Source: Amoeboaphelidium protococcarum X5
Lineage: Eukaryota > Fungi > Aphelidiomycota
NCBI GenBank assembly: GCA_023515725.1
Contig: JALDTO010000243.1
Coordinates: 1-11,238, forward strand
Direction: 5' to 3'
Length of the DNA stretch: 11,238 nucleotides
The number at the start of each line of letters is the position of its first letter. Position 1 is the stretch's first letter. Under the pieces are notes generated by a model. It saw only the letters and a list, made by a program, of their open reading frames with translations, ran no database searches and was not told the origin of the DNA. Below are positions 1 through 10,775 of this stretch, piece after piece. A program made the position numbers and the translations under genes.

Positions 1-208
1 GGTAAGGGCAAGGTGAACTTGAAGGGTGCTGATGGCCAACTGAATGTGAGACCGACTGAAGTTTTCATGTGCAGTGTTGTCATGCGTCAAGGTTATGGTG
101 AAGGTAAGTTGACTCGATATTTTAATGAGTAACTACTATTACTTCTTCAATTGTTTGTATGTTCCATCAAGTGTAGGATTCAGATGGATGAGCTAGTACA
201 TCAACTGA
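1..208 (+). CDS. SAR1: Sar1 small GTPase (COPII), 3' part only; exons 1-103 and 177-208
   Basis: Spliced translation [40 protein letters not shown](TAG=Q)YIN-TGA matches the conserved Sar1 C-terminus (RPxEVFMCSV..RQGYGEGFRWLSQYI). TAG at 194-196 occupies the conserved Gln. Stop is TGA at 206-208. The 5' end lies outside the window. Confidence 0.96.
104..176 (+). other. Spliceosomal intron in SAR1 (73 nt, phase 1)
   Basis: GTAAGT donor at 104 and TGTAG acceptor ending at 176. Removing it restores GYGEGFRW. Confidence 0.93.
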
Positions 209-957
209 GCACAGTTCGCGGATCCATCAAGTATGAATAATAAATATCATCAGAGTTCTTATCTTGCATATGTTTTTTGGGATAGTAAAAAGTTCAATTG
301 TTAGCAGCTTTCATGTTATTTTCGCTGATATGTACGATACAAGTCTACAGTGGTGCGTTTTGAACTAATATGTTCAATAGCGAGCCACCTACTCTAGGTG
401 TCACAAGGATAGACAAACGAGAGAACATACGAGCATGATTTGTCTACAATGTTTAATGCGCGAACAGCAGATTACAAATAATCATAAACTGAACCCTTGA
501 ATTATTAATTACAACATTTATACTATAGCGACACCAAAACAGCTTTTTAACTTCCTGTCGCGTAATAGGGATCGCTTTGGAGTATCATATCATTGCAGTG
601 CTGTCTCATACACACACATACTGGTTTCATAATATTGAGAAGGTTCCTGTGTCGAATAGAATAAAACGTTATTGTTTTCACAGCAAAATTCACAATATCT
701 GATCCCAGAGATGATGAAAAAGTTCTCAATTTACTGTTACATACGCATACCTGACGGGGAAGCGTTGTTGAGCAAAGGTCACAATGGCTCTCTAATTAAA
801 GCTTTCTGGAGGCCGTTGTTATGGAAATATATCAACTGGTCTGAAAGATACCAGTTGTCACGTATGTAAATGAATTTTAAATTTTAATCATAGATAAGAA
901 TTATAATACTAAAGTCAGTCACAAGAGTAGCTAAAATATATCAAGAGGAGAATATAG

Positions 958-2106
958 ATGGTCATCTTGCGAAAGAGATTGGTATTTGTGATCTCCGCTC
1001 TGATGATCTTAATTGTTGTCTATTCAATTTAGCTTCTGCCAGATGTTGGGCCTAATTTTAAATCATTCCATCGACCAGGTTCTAATTAAAATATTGCTGT
1101 CAACAGGAGGAATGATACTGCTGCCTCTGGTCCTTTACATTACTCCAAGCTTCCTGAGGTGACTGCAGCTGTCGTGTATCTGATAGCTCATCATGAAGAG
1201 AATAATTTTCGTAAAAGTGTCAAGATGACTCTGGACAATTTTATATCCCTCAGCGACCACAAAAAGTACCCAGTAATCGCTCTATACGAAGATAATTACC
1301 CGAAGAGCGACCTAGACGCGCTAATCAAGGACACCACGTCTATGTATAATGCCAAAGGATGTACGCTCGTGTATCAGAAGATCAAGTTTACATTCCCGAA
1401 GCATTACGATTAAAAAACTCAGATTGCGATCAACTTTGCATATCCTAATTACAATTTCATGATACATCTGTGGTTTATGGATATTTTTTAGATGGAGCGT
1501 ATTAAAGATCTAGAGTACTATTGGCGGTTGGACACTGACTCGTTTATACACAATAAGGTGTATGTTGATCCGTTTCGTTTCATGAAGCACCAGGGCATTA
1601 AATACGGATATAGAGATGATACTGTGCGTGATGTTGATCGGGTCACTGTCGGAATGCTGGAAGCCGTTGATAGGTGGTTAGAGGGACATGTTCTTGCGCG
1701 TAGTTTATCCCGTCAGAATGATATGGAACTACCAGCTGTGGACGAGCGGGAAGGCTATGGGCCTTTGATGATTTACACCAACTTTGAGATTGCGCATGTA
1801 CCAACCTTTTAGAACCGAGCCAAGAACGAAAAGGTGTAATTACAGGATGGGAGTATCATGCAGACTGCGGATCGAAATAAGTAACTTGTGGAATTTGCTG
1901 ATTACATTGATCGTACGAACAGAATATTCACTCATCGATGGGGTGACGCGCCTCTGCGGTACTACCAGCTCAAGATGCTATTCTCCTGGGAGAAGGAGGT
2001 GTGGAAGTTTTGCGCTGTCGATTATGAGCATGCTCATCATAATAAACGCTTCGAGCCTTGTGTAGACGACATTGCGCTGAATTCAATTGTATGGAGAGAT
2101 GATTGA
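958..2106 (+). CDS. Glycosyltransferase family 15 (KRE2/MNT1/KTR-like alpha-1,2-mannosyltransferase), copy 1, 382 aa in code 6
   Basis: A single frame joins track ORFs 1159-1413, 1492-1812 and 1888-2106 through 7 in-frame TAA/TAG (1030, 1087, 1411, 1489, 1810, 1837, 1882) with no TGA until 2104-2106. N-terminal type II anchor MVILRKRLVFVISALMILIVVYSI. GT15 motifs YYWRLDTDS, DPFRFM..KYGY, YTNFEI, RWGDAP. Confidence 0.9.
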
Positions 2107-2245
2107 CTTCACTCGCAATTCAATGTAGATTTTATGAATCTTTGAAACGTGCATTATAATATTGTCTCACCGTCCATAATCTAGTTTCACGTTTGACTTT
2201 TGTTGCTTATTACACCAACTACCATTCACCATTATCTGAATTATA

Positions 2246-2770
2246 ATGGAACAAATTGAATCTAAAACTTTTAAGAAATTGAAATTGAAATTTGCTGTCT
2301 TTACCTGTTTAAGCCCAAATATATAAATGAATGGGCAATTATTAATTTTCGATGATATTCCCGGTTTACCTTTGTGAAAATTCCATGTAAATGATGAAAC
2401 TGCCTCACAAGGCGCGTCTCTGTTTGTCTATTATCGACTGTACAATGCTGGTGTAAAGTTCAATGATACAGACTTGATTTACTAAAGTGCCACTGATTTT
2501 GGTGTTTAGAATAATTGTCTGCAGTTATATAATTCTACGCTGCTATCAGGTATGCAAGATATGGTGTTTTAGAAGATCCATTGTCGACGCTTTATCTCTT
2601 GGATCAGCGATGTCATGAAATTCAACAGTGATCAAGAACGACTCTTCGTTTCAAGCACATCATTACGCGTCCTGATCAAGCATTTATAAGGAGTATATAG
2701 GCATTCTAATCTGAGGTCCGAAAATCAGTAGATACTCCAGTAATCTCTTTAAACGACAGAAATTTGTTGA
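2246..2770 (+). pseudogene. Orphan ORF relic A (unknown protein, 174 codons in code 6 with one internal TGA at 2375-2377)
   Basis: Reads MEQIESK...LSPNIQMNGQLLIFDDIPGLPL*KFHVNDETASQGASLFVYYRLY... and aligns without gaps to relic B at 4399 (19/39 identical residues in the core). The frame stays open from 2378 to TGA at 2768-2770. Confidence 0.6.
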
Positions 2771-2945
2771 TCGTGGACAGCTTAGCTGATGGATTTTTGA
2801 CTGTTGTCGCCCAGAGTTAACTTTAGTGCACGGTGCGTTGTGATTAAGGGATTTTTCAGGGCCGCGCTCTACATTGTATCTTTCGGTAAGACACTTTCAA
2901 GTTCCACTTTTTTAGGATCATTCGCGCATAGGAAGGGAAGTTATT

Positions 2946-4081
2946 ATGGTTACTTAGAGGAAAAGTCTGATAGCTATATTCTCTGTGGTATTGGTCATTA
3001 TAGTTGTCTACTCACTTAAGCTTTTGCCAGATGTTGGACGAAGTTTCAAATACTTACGCCGATTCGGATATTACAATCTATACAAGAAGAATGGTAGTAT
3101 ACCAGGAGCCTTACATTATTCGAAGCTTCCTCAAGCGACGGCAGCAGTGGTGTACCTGATTGCTCATCATGAAGAAGACAACTTTAGGAAAAGTGTTTTG
3201 ATGACTCTGGATAATTCATAAATCTAAATGACCACAAAAAGTACGCGGTAATAGCTCTCTATGAAGATAACTATCCGAAAAGCGATTTGTATGCGCTCAT
3301 CAAGGACACAGTCTATGAGTTTGAGGCCAAAGGATGTAAACTTATCTATTAGAAGGTCAATTTTACCTTCCCGTCGCATTATGATTAAAAGTCCGAGATT
3401 GCGGTTAACTTTGCATACCCGGGCTACAATTTTATGATACATCTGTGGTTCATGGACATATTTTAGACGGACCGTATTAAGGATCTGGAGTATTACTGGC
3501 GTCTAGACACTGACTCTTTCATACACAACAAGGTGTATGCCGATCCGTTCCGCTTTATGAAGTACAAGGGCATCAAGTATGGATACAGAGATGACAATAG
3601 ACGCGACAATAATTTTGTAACGGTCGGAATACCGGATGCTGTTGATAAGTGGTTAGATGGACATGTACTTGCGCGTAATCTATCCCGTCAGAATGATATG
3701 GAACTACCAGCAGTTGACGAGCGGGAAGGTTATTGGCCTCTAATGATGTACACCAACTTTGAGATTGCGCATATACCAACCTTTTAAAATAAAGCCAAGA
3801 ACGAAAAGGTGTAGTTACAGGATGGGAGTATCATGCAGACTGCGGATCGGAATAAATAAATTGTAGAATTTGCTGACTACATTGATCGTACGAACAGAAT
3901 ATTCACTCACCGATGGGGTGACGCGCCTCTACGGTATTATTAGCTCAAGATGCTATTCTCTTGGGAGAAGGAGGTGTGGAAGTTTTGCGCTGTGGATTAT
4001 GAGCATGCGCATCATAATAAACGCTTCGAGCCTTGCGTAGACGACATTGCGCTGTAGTCAATCATATGGATTGATGTTTGA
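2946..4081 (+). pseudogene. GT15 mannosyltransferase copy 2 (about 378 aa) with a single-base deletion near 3215-3217; recent pseudogene or sequencing error
   Basis: Starts at ATG 2946 (MVT(TAG)RKSLIAIFSVVLVIIVVYSL). Collinear with copy 1, but AAT TC ATA replaces copy 1 AAT TTT ATA, which shifts the frame. The downstream frame keeps all motifs (YYWRLDTDS, YTNFEI, RWGDAP) and ends at TGA 4079-4081, aligned with the copy 1 stop. Confidence 0.85.
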
Positions 4082-4398
4082 CTTCACTGGTCTTTGAATT
4101 CTTTTTCTTTTATTATGAAAGAAATATAGTCTTACAATGTTATGTTCCATTACTCCACTACAGCGCTTTGATTTGTCAGTATAACTTCTGTTGCTTCAAC
4201 TATCATGATTTATGGGTCATGTTACGTGACATTGACGTGTCAGTGTTAAAGTATGAGTCAATGCTGTGACAATTAAGCGCAAACTGTCAGCTCATTTCTC
4301 TTTTCAAAAGCAGAACAAACTCTGCTTTAAATAGTTTGGGCTATAAGGGAATACAATAATATTGCTTCTACATTTGTGGCACTCATGAAGCATTATTA

Positions 4399-4885
4399 AT
4401 GGACTAATCACGTTTAAAACCCCAATTGGACCGAGTTAGTAACTTGCATCCTCTTCCTACTCTTATCCCAAATACGAAAATGGATAGGTAGATATTAAAG
4501 CCTGACGATATACGCGATTTGCTTGTTGAAAAATTCAATGTGACAATTGAAACTGCCGCGAAGTACGCGCAACTGTTGGTAAATTATCGTCAGTATAGTG
4601 ATAATATCAGATATACTGATGAGGTGTCACTTTCTGAATGGAAATGAGTGGTCACTGGAAGTTAAAAGAAACGTGTGTATCTTTGATGAAGATAAGATCA
4701 AAGAGATCGGCTAACTTACCCAGTTGAGTCGATAGTATGATTTACTGGAGGCACCAGTCGCTGAAAATTACTCTAAAATTATCCGCTGCTTCCCTCCTCA
4801 GTAGTCAAGTTATCATTAGACTGTAGTAACGTAGATGATATTCTACGAAAAAGATTAGTTGGTCTTATCTACCTAGATTGAATGA
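4399..4885 (+). pseudogene. Orphan ORF relic B (paralogue of relic A); first frame ends at TGA 4645-4647, with a possible frameshifted continuation to TGA 4883-4885
   Basis: MD(TAA)SRLK...LIPNTKMDR(TAG)ILKPDDIRDLLVEKFNVTIETAAKYAQLLVNYRQY. The two ATGs are 81 nt apart, as in relic A. The extent beyond 4647 is tentative. Confidence 0.55.
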
Positions 4886-5225
4886 AACTCGTTAATTTAA
4901 AAATAAACTACTAAGTTCATGTTAAATTTTCTCTTCTTCCCTTTACAGTATATGGTTTGACTCGCGTGGCGGTGTTCTCTCATTGATGATGTTTCCCAAA
5001 ACGGAAATCCGATCCTGGGTGGTCGGTCCCTTAGCGACGGAAACTCGTGAAAATCGGTGGCCCCTGCTACTGTTTAATTGGGCGGCATTGAACAGTCATT
5101 TACTCCTGATCAGGTGGATTTTTCAGAGTATATTAACAGCTAGGTGGTCATTCAGCATAGTCCGACACTTTTTATTTTCAAAAGAATTAATTTGGACCCT
5201 GCACTGAGTGTAAATAAGTTTGATC

Positions 5226-7802
5226 ATGAATTCGTTGCTTCATCTAGTGTTTTATTTCAAAGTCTTGTTTTGGTCCATGGTACCGGTGCTTTGCGGGGTA
5301 TACCTAGCCTGGAGATTCGCTGATGCTGTTATTCATAATAGATAGATGCAATTAGGACTGTTTATACTCTTGGATTTCTATGTCCTGTGCGAATTACTGT
5401 TTTACATCTATTTTGTAAAGACCAAGAAGCGATTACAGAATTACGTGCCTCCATCTCTACTTGGTCACAGAGCATCTGATTACGATGGTCATCATCGCGG
5501 CTAGGGAAGGATGAAGGGAATTGCCACTAAAGAGGAGAGATGGAACCTATTTGTGAAGTGCATGAACACCGTCCACCTGGAAAAGTATCGCCACCCTGCT
5601 GCTGATCTGTAAAGCGGTAATGACGTTAATTTCAACGCTGTGTATTAATATCTTGCTGGATGGTTTTATTATGTCGACCCGTCGCTGAATAAAAATGCAG
5701 ATTACAGTCGAAGAGTTCTAGATCCATCTGAAATATATATGGATAACGTTTTGGAGTTTATTGGATGGGCATTTTTCATGGAGGATTACCATCTGCTAAA
5801 GAAGTTGGCCAGCGGAGATTTTAATTTTGATGCTGAAGGAGAGCAGTAATCCATGTCAAATTTGGGATAGACGTTGAAGCATCTAGACTCTACCGATACT
5901 TAGCGCAAGGCTTAGGACCTTCTAGATGAAATGAAAGAAATGCTCAACTACGCCGCCATCAATTACTCATCAGAGCCCCTGTATTGGCAGCCTGGTTTCA
6001 ATCCGAATATCAAATCCATCAGACTCACCCTGGATGAAGTTTAGGCTATTCATAAACCTCTTCTGTATTACTCGATTATTGCAGTATGTCATGGTCTATT
6101 CGCGTTTGTTGTCACTCGATTCTGGGGCTTTACAAGAGGGGATGCTACTGGTGTTAAAACTCCATACTATTATAGGCCACCACTAAAGGAGATCGCTGGT
6201 GGAGATAAAGCTAACACAGTAAGTCCTCTTTTTATCCAACATGGTATAGGCGCTGGCGTGTTTGGGTATGCTCCGATGCTGTGGAATCTTTTAAAGTACT
6301 GTCGTGACTCTGTGCGTGATCCTGACAATGCTCAGTATCGTCATCTTGAGAATACTCCAATATTTCTGTTGGAAATCAACAGCGTATCATCTCTATTCTA
6401 TCCCTTGTACCATGATAAGATTGAAGATTTTGTTGGGGTTCATGAGATGGCTGACGATGTAGAAAAGATTTTATTTCACCATGGTTATTTCACTGAGGTG
6501 ACTCCGCGGGACCCTTCGGATAAAGATCAAGACCTTTTGAGTACTCCTATAAGTGAAGGTGGTGTTCGTAAGCGATCCTCCTTTATAGCCAAATCCAAAC
6601 AGCTGATAACTAGAAAGTTTTTGGGAAAGTCGGATATTAAAGCGTCAGCCGTTGATCAAAATGCCACTACCATCTAGTAATAGCCATTTACTATTAAGCT
6701 GCCTATGAGCATAACATATGTTGGCCACTCCCTAGGCACTACCTATCTCTCTGCTCTTATGCAGAAGACTTATCAGTATAAAGCGGATGGTGTGAATTAT
6801 CACAATTTGGTAAAGCACGGTATCCTAGTAGATCCAGTCTGCTTCCTCCTTCATCACTCAGATGTTGCATACAACTTTATTCATAGACTTCCTATGTCGT
6901 TCTCTTAGATTGTACGTCAACTGCTGTCCTTTAAAGGTTTCCAGAGTGGTGCCATAGTTACGTCAAAGTAGCAGAGATATCGTGCCAATTGGAAGTGGGT
7001 CGAACTGTTACTTTATAATTTTGCATCAAAGGAGCTTTATATAAGCTGGACACTGGGAAGATGCTTCTACTGGCATTAGAAAGTCATATTTAAGGAAGAT
7101 ATTCCACGTAATGTTAAAGTAAGTGTTGTGTTGGGCGAAGACGATGCTATAGTCAATGCTGAGTTGATTCGCGCATATCTCCACTCTGATGGCGACGATG
7201 ACTTTGACTGTAATTACAATCTGGTGCCGTCTGATGCTTTGAATCAATTTAAAGTATTGCGAAATGGTGCTGATGGCTACGTTGGCTCCAACTTGTCTTT
7301 GTATTACTACGAGGGGAAGAATCATGCTCACTTTCTATTTTCACCTCCGATGGAACGATAAGTTCTCCAGGTGATGCTTTAAGGTTATGAACAAGTGGAT
7401 GATAATATTGAGGTGTCTTCTTCTAGTGTAGTACGTTCAAGTGCAGATATTATTAACTAAGCTCACGTAAATTCCACTGATTGCAATGTGGGTGTTTAGC
7501 AAAAGCATTTGAACGCGTAGTAAATGTAATAGACTGACTACTAATAGCCGCCGCTATCAACAAAGTTTAACTCATACATGGTGGATATCATCCCGTAGTT
7601 TATCTGGAATCCTATGCTGTCCGTGTTTAATACTGCACCTCCTCACCCGACTCTTAACTTCAAATCATCATAATACCCTCTAAGTGGTGGTGATGCTGGA
7701 CCTCCAAGTGTGTCTGTAAGATCAGCGTCAAGTGCAAGCTTTCTAGTAGATAGTAGCCTTCCATCGCTAATGTCTGAAGATAATTAATACCAAGATATAT
7801 GA
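5226..7802 (+). CDS. Membrane-anchored alpha/beta-hydrolase fold protein, 858 aa in code 6
   Basis: One TGA-free frame from ATG 5226 to TGA 7800-7802 joins track ORFs 6258, 6705 and 7128 across about 28 TAA/TAG. Two N-terminal hydrophobic segments, oxyanion motif HGIG (6240-6251), nucleophile elbow GHSLG (6723-6737), LVDPVCFLL, candidate acid in LGEDDAIV (7131-7154), candidate His in GKNHAH (7323). The tail after about 7380 is low complexity. Substrate unknown. Confidence 0.88.
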
Positions 7803-7988
7803 GAGTATCGCTACCAATGCATAGAGAATGAGACAGTATAGCTGTAGCAGTGTTTAGTTTAATGTTCAGTGTACGTTTATTCATCATCATTAAATCTTTA
7901 GTTCTAATCTACTTTACCAACACTATTTTTATTAATCGCTCCATCCCAATCTCATACTTAAGTCATAAATCAGTGAACTGAAAGTTGG

Positions 7989-8358
7989 TCATAACTCTTG
8001 ATTAGGATCTTCTAGAGGAGATGCATCTGGATCTGGTCCGGCGAATTGTTTCAAAATCTCTGGTAGATCAGTGTCATTAGTAACATTCAACTTTGGCTAA
8101 GGACTGCCAAATCCATACAGAGAAAATAGAATAAAGGCAAACAGTGCAGCGATAACAATCAGTCCAGGGATAACATACTTTCTTGCCACCTACATTCAAT
8201 CTCGTCATCATCTATTAACATTATGTCGTTTACAACAAGTGTGAAAATGGATAATATCAAACCTCGTGTGCTCTTTTGTTCGCTTCAATCCTGGCCAACT
8301 TTTACTGCCTATTCTCTCTGGACTCCTTCTAACTCGAAATCTATTTAGTTTTTGGCAT
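7989..8358 (-). CDS. Small single-pass membrane/coiled-coil protein, SMCO4-like, 98 aa; exons 8358-8263 and 8189-7989
   Basis: MPKTKQISSQKESRENRQQKLARIEANKRAHE|VARKYVIPGLIVIAALFAFILFSLYGFGSPQPKLNVTNDTDLPEILKQFAGPDPDASPLEDPNQEL-TGA, with four of the Gln encoded by TAA/TAG. A charged helical N-terminus followed by V[IL]P and a TM helix resembles SMCO4. The family call is from recall. This gene is absent from the supplied ORF track. Confidence 0.75.
8190..8262 (-). other. Spliceosomal intron (73 nt, phase 0)
   Basis: GAG|GTTTGA donor and TGTAG|GTG acceptor. Left unspliced, the frame hits TGA immediately. Splicing joins the charged helix in frame to the TM segment. Confidence 0.75.
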
Positions 8359-8540
8359 CTTCAAATATAAATCTAACGATTACTACTTTACTGAATGTTT
8401 TTATTAGAAAGTTATATCAAATAACTTGGGCGAATAAAGAGTTAAGTTGAATGATGCTGCGTTTGTTTGATCTAAAGACTATCAGGATAATTCAAATAAA
8501 AACACAGTCAAGTAATTTCAATACATTTATTTCTTTGAGT

Positions 8541-10775
8541 TCATTCTTGAGCAAATTTATTATAAGTTGCAAGCCACTAGCATTAAGACACATCTTCCAT
8601 GCTTAATCGCTTGTATACATTGACAGTGAGCATTCCATCCAGCAAATCAACCACGTCTTTACTATAGGTTCTACCATTCTCCAGAAAGCCACGTGTATTC
8701 AACGAAGGATTATTATTGAATGATGAACTCAATGATGATGAACCAAATGATTGTGAGCCGCACGACTACTGATTAGGACTAGTTAATGAGTATTCCGAGG
8801 TGGAAGAGCGGAGTCGCTTATAACATCCAGATAAGATTTTCAACTGGCACCGCGGACCATAGACATCACAGAATGGTAGTTAATTACAGAGCATGACATA
8901 TAAAGTTACTCCAAGAGACCAGACGTCACTAGTAGGAGATGGATAAGTGTATAGAGACTGTAGATTGCTTCTACCTTCTTGTGGATGCAGAAATGAATGA
9001 TCCAGCTCTTCAGGTGACGCGTATTCAAGAGAACCTACACCGCCAGCTTCCAGAATCTAATCAATGTCTTTACACTCGCAACCGTATCTATTCTTCGGTG
9101 TCCCCACCTGAGTAGAATTACCATTGCTATCCAGCGGATCAATCAGCTGAAATCTTTCACTAAGAGAAAAGTCACCCAACCTGGCCACCAACTTACCACT
9201 AGCATCAAAGTCGAGGAACACATTCTCCGGTTTGATATCGCGGTGAACAATCTACTTGCTATGAAGATACGATACAGCAGATACAATATCCCGGAATATG
9301 TACTTGGCAATGTCTTCAGTCAAACCATTAGGATGCTCATTAATATAAGTCAACAGCTAACCTTGTTTGCAAATTTCCATCACTAGAAGTAGATTCTATT
9401 CATCAAACTCGATAATATCCAGCAGAGGTACAATGTTTGGATGAGACAATGATTTCCACAGAGATAACTCACGATAGAACAAATCATCTTCTTCCATCTC
9501 TGTAACAACTTCAGACATTTACACTTTCTGCTCATCACTGTCTGTATTATTCGCAACTGGCGACGTATTAGGAGATGCTGAAAACACGCCTGTGGTGGAG
9601 GTGATTTAATTCTCCTTTCCAGCCGCCGATCGAGATTGGGATGGTGAGCTCTGATCACTGGAAGGACTTTGTTAGGCTGTAGATTGAGAACATGGCTTTT
9701 TGTTAAGGTCACTCATTCGTTTCCTTTATACAATCTTTACGGCCACATTCTAGCTACGCCAAACACCATCATACACTTGACTGAAGTTACCAGAGCCGAT
9801 CTTCTTACTGATAGACAAGTCACCGATAGAAACATTTTCCCATTAAATACTTCTTGAATCAGTGCCGCTATTGTTCATACTGCCACTGTTATTCAAATAA
9901 TCGCGACTGAGAGTGGACGGGGCAGAGGTAACACCAGCCAAATGACCCAGAAATGATATAGCTGGCGATGGTGGGAGTGAGGAGTAGGCAGTTTCGTCAA
10001 TACAGGGAAAATGAGTAGATGGGCTTTATTGCAGATTAGACGTGGGAGCAGAACACGAGCCTTAACTGATGGAGCCAAGCCAATTTCTCGATCCATTGGA
10101 TGATATCCGCCTGACAGGAACTCTGAATGCTTATTAAGCTGCTGGCATCGAACATCGTCGCAATTATTCATCTAGAGGCTGGTTAGGTGACTGGTATATT
10201 TAAGAGTTAGGCAATGACAATGGCTGGATCAGCTTCGGTCGTCCGTGTCGATCAGAGGGATCAAGCGTGAAAGGACTCTACTCAGAGATGGATTACAGCT
10301 TTAATTACTATTACTACTGCGAGCCATCATCATCATCATTATTCTCCGATTATGATATATCGCTAGTGATACCAAGACCATAATTAGAGGAATTGTCGGA
10401 TGAACGTGTCTTTGAATTTTCATGCCATTAAGAGTCATGGTCCAAGTGCCGGCTACCACCATCATCAGCACTGTGTCGTTAATTACTGAGGTGTTGATTA
10501 AATCTTTATCTGATAGCCATAGCTATTCCCCCTTAACTTCCTCTGATACCTTCCGGTGTTACAGATCGACTACCAGTGGTCATCATATTATATCCAGAGC
10601 TATGCAAAGGGGGTCGATTGATAGCAAAGAGAGTATCATTCAGATATTAAATACTGCTATCCATGCTTCCAGACCCCTTATCGCCATAGAATGGCTTGAT
10701 CCGCTAAGAGGAGGATGAATTCACAATCGAAATGGGCCTAGTATCTGTCATTTATATAGGAGATTACGAAGGCAT
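8541..10775 (-). CDS. Ser/Thr protein kinase (CAMK-related, NNK1-like), 744 aa in code 6, with a long disordered N-terminus
   Basis: TGA-free frame from ATG 10775 (upstream in-frame TGA at 10797-10799) to TGA 8541-8543. Motifs: IGSGNFSQVY (~9770-9800), VAVK (9735-9746), RELSLWKSLSHPNIVPL, HRDIKPEN (HRD 9237-9245), LGDFSLSE (DFS 9165-9173), GSLEYASPE, DVWSLGVTLY, LPF..GPRCQLKILSG, DLLDGMLTVNVYKRLSM. Absent from the ORF track because of in-frame TAA/TAG. The subfamily call is tentative. Confidence 0.92.

Follow-up and report, generated by a model that had tools for sequence, protein, structure and literature searches.

What do the codons TAA and TAG mean in DNA where they interrupt six genes, and which codon ends these genes? 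The question is raised by contig JALDTO010000243.1 of assembly GCA_023515725.1 of the aphelid Amoeboaphelidium protococcarum, a parasite of algae. The stretch of DNA analysed here, referred to below as the window, is this whole contig, 11,238 bp long (0 differences) and with a G+C content of about 40%. The best explanation, to which a probability of about 0.97 is given, is that the window is nuclear DNA of A. protococcarum coded in translation table 6: UAA and UAG (together UAR, or TAR in DNA) are full sense codons for Gln, synonymous with CAA and CAG (CAR), and UGA is the only stop codon seen. The sequence-only reading of the window had proposed the same code, and it is borne out by the exchange of codons between gene copies, by Gln columns of homologues and by a spliced contig. 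It is an already known code in an already known species, and the result is a confirmation only.

Reading frames and genes

With the standard code, the window has no open reading frame (ORF) longer than 211 codons. When TGA is taken as the sole stop, its longest frames are 864, 751, and 410 codons long. In order-2 Markov simulations (n=300), the longest TGA-free frame had a mean of 284 +/- 47 codons and the observed length was reached in 0 of 300; the lengths of TAA-free and TAG-free frames in the window were at chance level in the same simulations. Six genes were recognised, the same six as in the NCBI annotation of the contig.

1 to 208, plus strand: 3' end of SAR1, exons 1-103 and 177-208, intron 104-176; PDB Sar1 matches (E value 7.5e-07); one TAR codon, TAG 194-196, read as Gln; TGA 206-208
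958 to 2106, plus strand: GT15 (KRE2/KTR-type) mannosyltransferase copy a, 382 aa, PF01793; 7 TAR (4 TAA and 3 TAG); TGA 2104-2106
2946 to 4081, plus strand: GT15 copy b, one base missing near 3214 (frameshift); 9 TAR; TGA 4079-4081
5226 to 7802, plus strand: membrane protein with alpha/beta-hydrolase fold (from homologues and motifs), 858 aa; 28 TAR (12 TAA and 16 TAG); TGA 7800-7802
7989 to 8358, minus strand: small single-pass membrane protein gene, 98 aa, intron 8190-8262, NCBI call; 4 TAR (1 TAA and 3 TAG); TGA 7989-7991
8541 to 10775, minus strand: Ser/Thr protein kinase of 744 aa, with PF00069 matched by four stop-free pieces; 35 TAR (24 TAA and 11 TAG); TGA 8541-8543

All six TGA ends lie where the sequence-only reading had placed them, but GT15b, which it had taken for one of six genes with in-frame TAR, is not one intact frame. 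The six gene models contain 44 TAA and 40 TAG in frame (84 TAR in about 2,500 codons), compared with 24 CAA and 32 CAG, and the median spacing between TAR codons is 13-17 codons.

Domain searches were made with stop-free pieces of the proteins, and Pfam recognised GT15 and kinase domains on them in profile order; in the kinase, which had been described as NNK1-like, the protein kinase domain was the only one. The kinase motifs GSGNFS, VAVK, HRDIKPEN, DFS, and DVWSLG, and the hydrolase motifs HGIG, GHSLG, GEDD, and HAH, all stay in a single frame across TAR codons, as had been claimed. No family was assigned to the full hydrolase by Pfam and NCBIfam; its fold was assigned because homologues carry PF00561/PF12697 and because of its own motifs.

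Source of the window and its syntenic copies

A stop-free piece of the hydrolase matched a deposited protein of 858 aa, encoded on JALDTO010000243.1, with 100% identity. The cluster mates of the hydrolase are the A. protococcarum proteins KAI3635650.1, encoded in the assembly of the window, and KAI3643559.1 and KAI3644675.1, encoded in GCA_023515745.1. The latter assembly is listed as A. protococcarum (10.64898/2026.07.21.739728). Going by accession range (PMC10057920), it probably represents strain FD95, and the assembly of the window probably strain X5. Each of the two assemblies holds two syntenic copies of the locus: the window and a second copy designated L002 in GCA_023515725.1, and the copies L003 and L004 in GCA_023515745.1, the second strain. 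L002-L004 are 88-96% identical to the window, which is to be expected because a genome-wide duplication has been described for A. protococcarum (PMC10608142).

A new reassignment in some other fungus-related lineage had also been considered, for the case that the source was not this aphelid. The fungus-like gene content (GT15, homoaconitase, and the hydrolase family of the window) would fit such a lineage too. However, the window represents an entire contig from an assembly that holds A. protococcarum proteins, and it is syntenic with the second A. protococcarum assembly at 93-96% identity, thus the aphelid source that had been suspected is correct and the case does not arise. An undescribed lineage is scarcely conceivable and is set aside, because the code was described from this very species.

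Both copies of the second strain resemble the window more (93-96% identity) than L002, from the assembly of the window, does (88%). Judged by these identities, such a pattern is what hybrid genomes derived from different parents would be expected to show.

Exchange of TAR codons between gene copies

The meaning of TAR was tested by codon exchange between copies of one gene and by homologue columns, both without use of the annotation. TAR and CAR were exchanged at 35 of 393 sites (0.089). This rate does not differ from that of the synonymous Leu exchange TTR-CTR (46/436, 0.106; p 0.48), and it is ten times higher than that of non-synonymous T/C changes in the first position (15/1702, 0.009; p 1e-15). 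TAA and TAG replaced each other at a rate of 0.069, compared with 0.074-0.081 for CAA-CAG, GAA-GAG, and AAA-AAG. Exchange of TAR with Glu, Lys, or Tyr codons was as low as 0.005-0.008, and among sense codons outside TAR, TAA exchanges most with CAA.

Single genes reveal the same equivalence. The two GT15 paralogues of the window swap CAG and TAG at two sites and TAA and TAG at two others; the SAR1 codon TAG 194-196 corresponds to CAG in L003, and the switch-II Gln of Sar1 is coded by TAG in L004 and by CAG in L002 and L003. In-frame TAR codons are also present in all copies of mitochondrial EF-Tu, homoaconitase, and topoisomerase II from the syntenic loci, with protein identity of 91-99%.

Decayed genes or sequencing errors could also produce interrupted frames, and the locus does hold a frameshifted GT15b and two decayed relics of an orphan gene (described below). 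Against this, only TAA and TAG interrupt the frames, never TGA, and the codons occur in all copies of Sar1 and the three genes just named, which are essential and conserved. This explanation is therefore practically negligible, and TAR is read as a sense codon.

TAA and TAG in homologue columns

Homoaconitase from the syntenic loci was aligned with 63 bacterial homologues. It has nine near-invariant Gln columns, of which four are occupied by TAA/TAG, four by CAA/CAG, and one by Ile. Two of the sites with TAA are in columns that are Gln in 50 of 56 and 62 of 62 homologues. Profile inference over the hydrolase and homoaconitase, which recovered 60 of 61 sense codons, scored TAG as Gln with 5.2 versus -13.3, a difference of 18 log units. 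The 65 hydrolase homologues, found in a search from protein P0003, are weakly informative, and just five TAR sites align to them; a search with the hydrolase of the window itself found one relative.

TAG 194-196 had been placed at a conserved Gln of Sar1. The codon is there, and among 67 metagenomic sequences found with the 61-aa exon as a query, Gln is the most common residue at this C-terminal site (42/67), but it is not invariant.

Several observations weigh against the reading of both codons as Gln. Profile inference alone leaves TAA unseparated between Gln (-0.1), Lys (-0.3), and Glu (-0.6). TAR codons of homoaconitase also stand at four columns conserved in bacterial homologues as Pro (two columns), Glu, and Gly; ordinary codons deviate as well at 29 of 273 conserved columns (about 11%), and the TAR at the Glu column is CAA in another copy. 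In the deposited hydrolase protein, each of the 28 TAR codons is translated as Q, but the depositors used table 6 and the NCBI calls are not independent; they show the code to be part of the annotation already and are no proof of its correctness. Finally, tRNA scans of the window and of L002-L004 found no tRNA gene, and no eRF1 gene is present in these four loci.

The unseparated profile scores would allow TAA and TAG to differ in meaning, or to code for Glu or Lys instead of Gln. Yet the two codons exchange at a synonymous rate, TAA is no more readily exchanged with GAR (0.008) or AAR (0.007) than non-synonymous codons are with each other, and the two homoaconitase columns with TAA are Gln in nearly all homologues. 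Separate meanings or another amino acid are thus hardly probable, and Gln is retained for both TAA and TAG.

A contig spliced at the small gene

If the standard code were used and TAR codons were spliced out or edited from U to C in RNA, editing would yield an identical TAR-CAR equivalence among DNA copies. In a contig from run X6, the GT-AG intron of the small gene (73 nt) is skipped; over 8261-8467 this contig does not differ from the window, and it keeps three in-frame TAR codons of exon 1 unchanged, at 8343, 8331, and 8304. A second X6 contig spans six TAR codons of the hydrolase without a gap. No record identifies run X6 as RNA; this status is inferred because the intron is skipped and intergenic bins are empty. 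The metatranscriptome run X14 gave little gene coverage. Since the X6 contigs keep TAR, and since TAR codons are spaced too densely for splicing, removal or editing in RNA is most improbable, and UAR is taken to be translated as such.

TGA as the only stop codon seen

All six genes of the window and all complete called genes of L002-L004 end with TGA (about 15 distinct genes, called with table 6 and therefore partly circular as evidence). No conserved gene that terminates at TAA or TAG, which would have argued against the proposed code, is among them. Independent of the annotation, the TGA of SAR1 coincides with the end of standard-code homologues, and a TAG stands four codons earlier. TAR codons are not depleted near gene ends and are located 2, 5, 8, and 12 codons before TGA in four genes.

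These ends bear on whether the code is ambiguous, with UAA and/or UAG coding for Gln inside genes and still terminating near some mRNA ends, as in Condylostoma and Blastocrithidia. Genes ending with TAR would be missed by construction when called with table 6, and the sample of about 15 distinct genes is small. The uniform TGA ends, the position of the SAR1 stop, and TAR codons only a few codons upstream of TGA speak against it, and an ambiguous code of this kind is very unlikely. Equally doubtful is the possibility that, in some A. protococcarum genes, UAA or UAG still acts as a stop in certain contexts, masked by table-6 annotation; if true, an opisthokont would have an ambiguous nuclear stop code. 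UGA is thus treated as the only stop of the genes seen.

Relation to known codes

For A. protococcarum, UAR as Gln was described in Karpov et al. 2013 (Protist 164:195), a paper cited for it in PMC5304391, PMC6299283, and PMC11687900. In the account of that work given by the citing papers, the species, the codons, and the amino acid are the same, and no difference from the window was found. The code is a real rarity, as it is the sole fungus-related nuclear reassignment of UAR in the literature compared. The A. protococcarum genome needs to be read with table 6, and in-frame TAA/TAG alone are no finding in it.

The same code, with UAA and UAG for Gln and UGA as stop, is used by ciliates (Tetrahymena and others), hexamitid diplomonads, the oxymonad Streblomastix, and ulvophycean algae (PMC11687900), which differ from the aphelid in belonging to other supergroups and in the independent origin of the code. 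Condylostoma and Blastocrithidia share in-frame UAR as sense codons with A. protococcarum, but UAR or UAA also terminates there (PMC5304391), whereas all ends seen in A. protococcarum are UGA. Paraphelidium tribonematis, a fellow aphelid with a homologue of the hydrolase, uses the standard code (PMC6299283); the change therefore arose within aphelids and is recent and local.

A divergent metagenomic Sar1 sequence, QLAH01015060.1, unrelated to that of the window, likewise carries TAA/TAG in frame at Gln-like sites and has TGA as its stop codon. Its source is presumably a ciliate.

Putative decoding mechanism

By analogy with ciliates and diplomonads, UAR is probably decoded by tRNA-Gln copies with UUA and CUA anticodons, which would have been derived from tRNA-Gln(UUG/CUG) and would be charged by the glutaminyl-tRNA synthetase, while an eRF1 with an altered N-domain would recognise UGA only. 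A tRNA-Gln(CUA) is on record for Tetrahymena, Condylostoma, and Spironucleus (PMC5304391). AT-biased mutation may later have turned many CAR codons into TAR. With TAR at 60% of the Gln codons in genes of the window, the reassignment is complete as far as usage goes and would be hard to reverse. The components of the decoding machinery (tRNAs, glutaminyl-tRNA synthetase, and eRF1) are near enough to those of yeast for testing there.

The gene of mitochondrial EF-Tu (L002:1572-2849, minus strand) has 5-6 TAR codons only, all within its first 190 codons, and the adjoining homoaconitase gene has 38-39. The use of TAR may fall with expression level.

GT15 pair, orphan gene, and other features

GT15b lacks one T at 3210-3216 compared with both copies of the second strain (L003 and L004), which are intact and encode 378 aa. 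In run X2, a read-derived contig (depth 141) has no gap relative to the window at this site, and contigs of runs X6 and X8 have one gap. The frameshift looks real and strain-specific, and the NCBI model of the gene (354 aa over 1,136 nt) probably skips it by means of a spurious intron. The window, L003, and L004 have the tandem GT15 pair (958-4081 in the window), and L002 has a single GT15 gene (7220-8368). The 3' parts of the pair (1690-2106 and 3665-4081) are far more alike than the 5' parts, a sequence pattern that suggests gene conversion.

Between GT15 and the hydrolase, L002 has an intact table-6 ORF of 290 codons (L002:8799-9671) that is not called by NCBI. A 31-aa piece of this orphan matched DUF3990 weakly (E value 0.019, below the cut-off). 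In the window, L003, and L004, two decayed relics are all that is left of it, one after each GT15 gene, which indicates tandem duplication of a unit of GT15 plus orphan gene. Those in the window are as follows.

2336 to 2683, plus strand: decayed relic A; tblastn to L002:8799-9671, 31% identity, E value 2e-11
4480 to 4875, plus strand: relic B, likewise decayed and lacking a large internal part; matches residues 1-48 and 205-289 of L002:8799-9671 with 64-69% identity (tblastn)

The lengths of the L003 hydrolase (10001-12579) and homoaconitase (1591-3817) genes are not multiples of three, and their models are shortened to 838 and 724 aa, respectively; the annotation here bridges either frameshifts or errors of the assembly. 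The 98-aa protein of the small gene has a basic N-terminus and one membrane segment, and pieces of it had no match in Pfam; we take it to resemble small membrane proteins of the SMCO4/DUF4519 type. The Rfam search gave no match. Relatives of window positions 1000-10000 were found as contigs about 91-97% identical in a 2013 biofilm metagenome, and for a small part of the window also in freshwater and sediment metagenomes.

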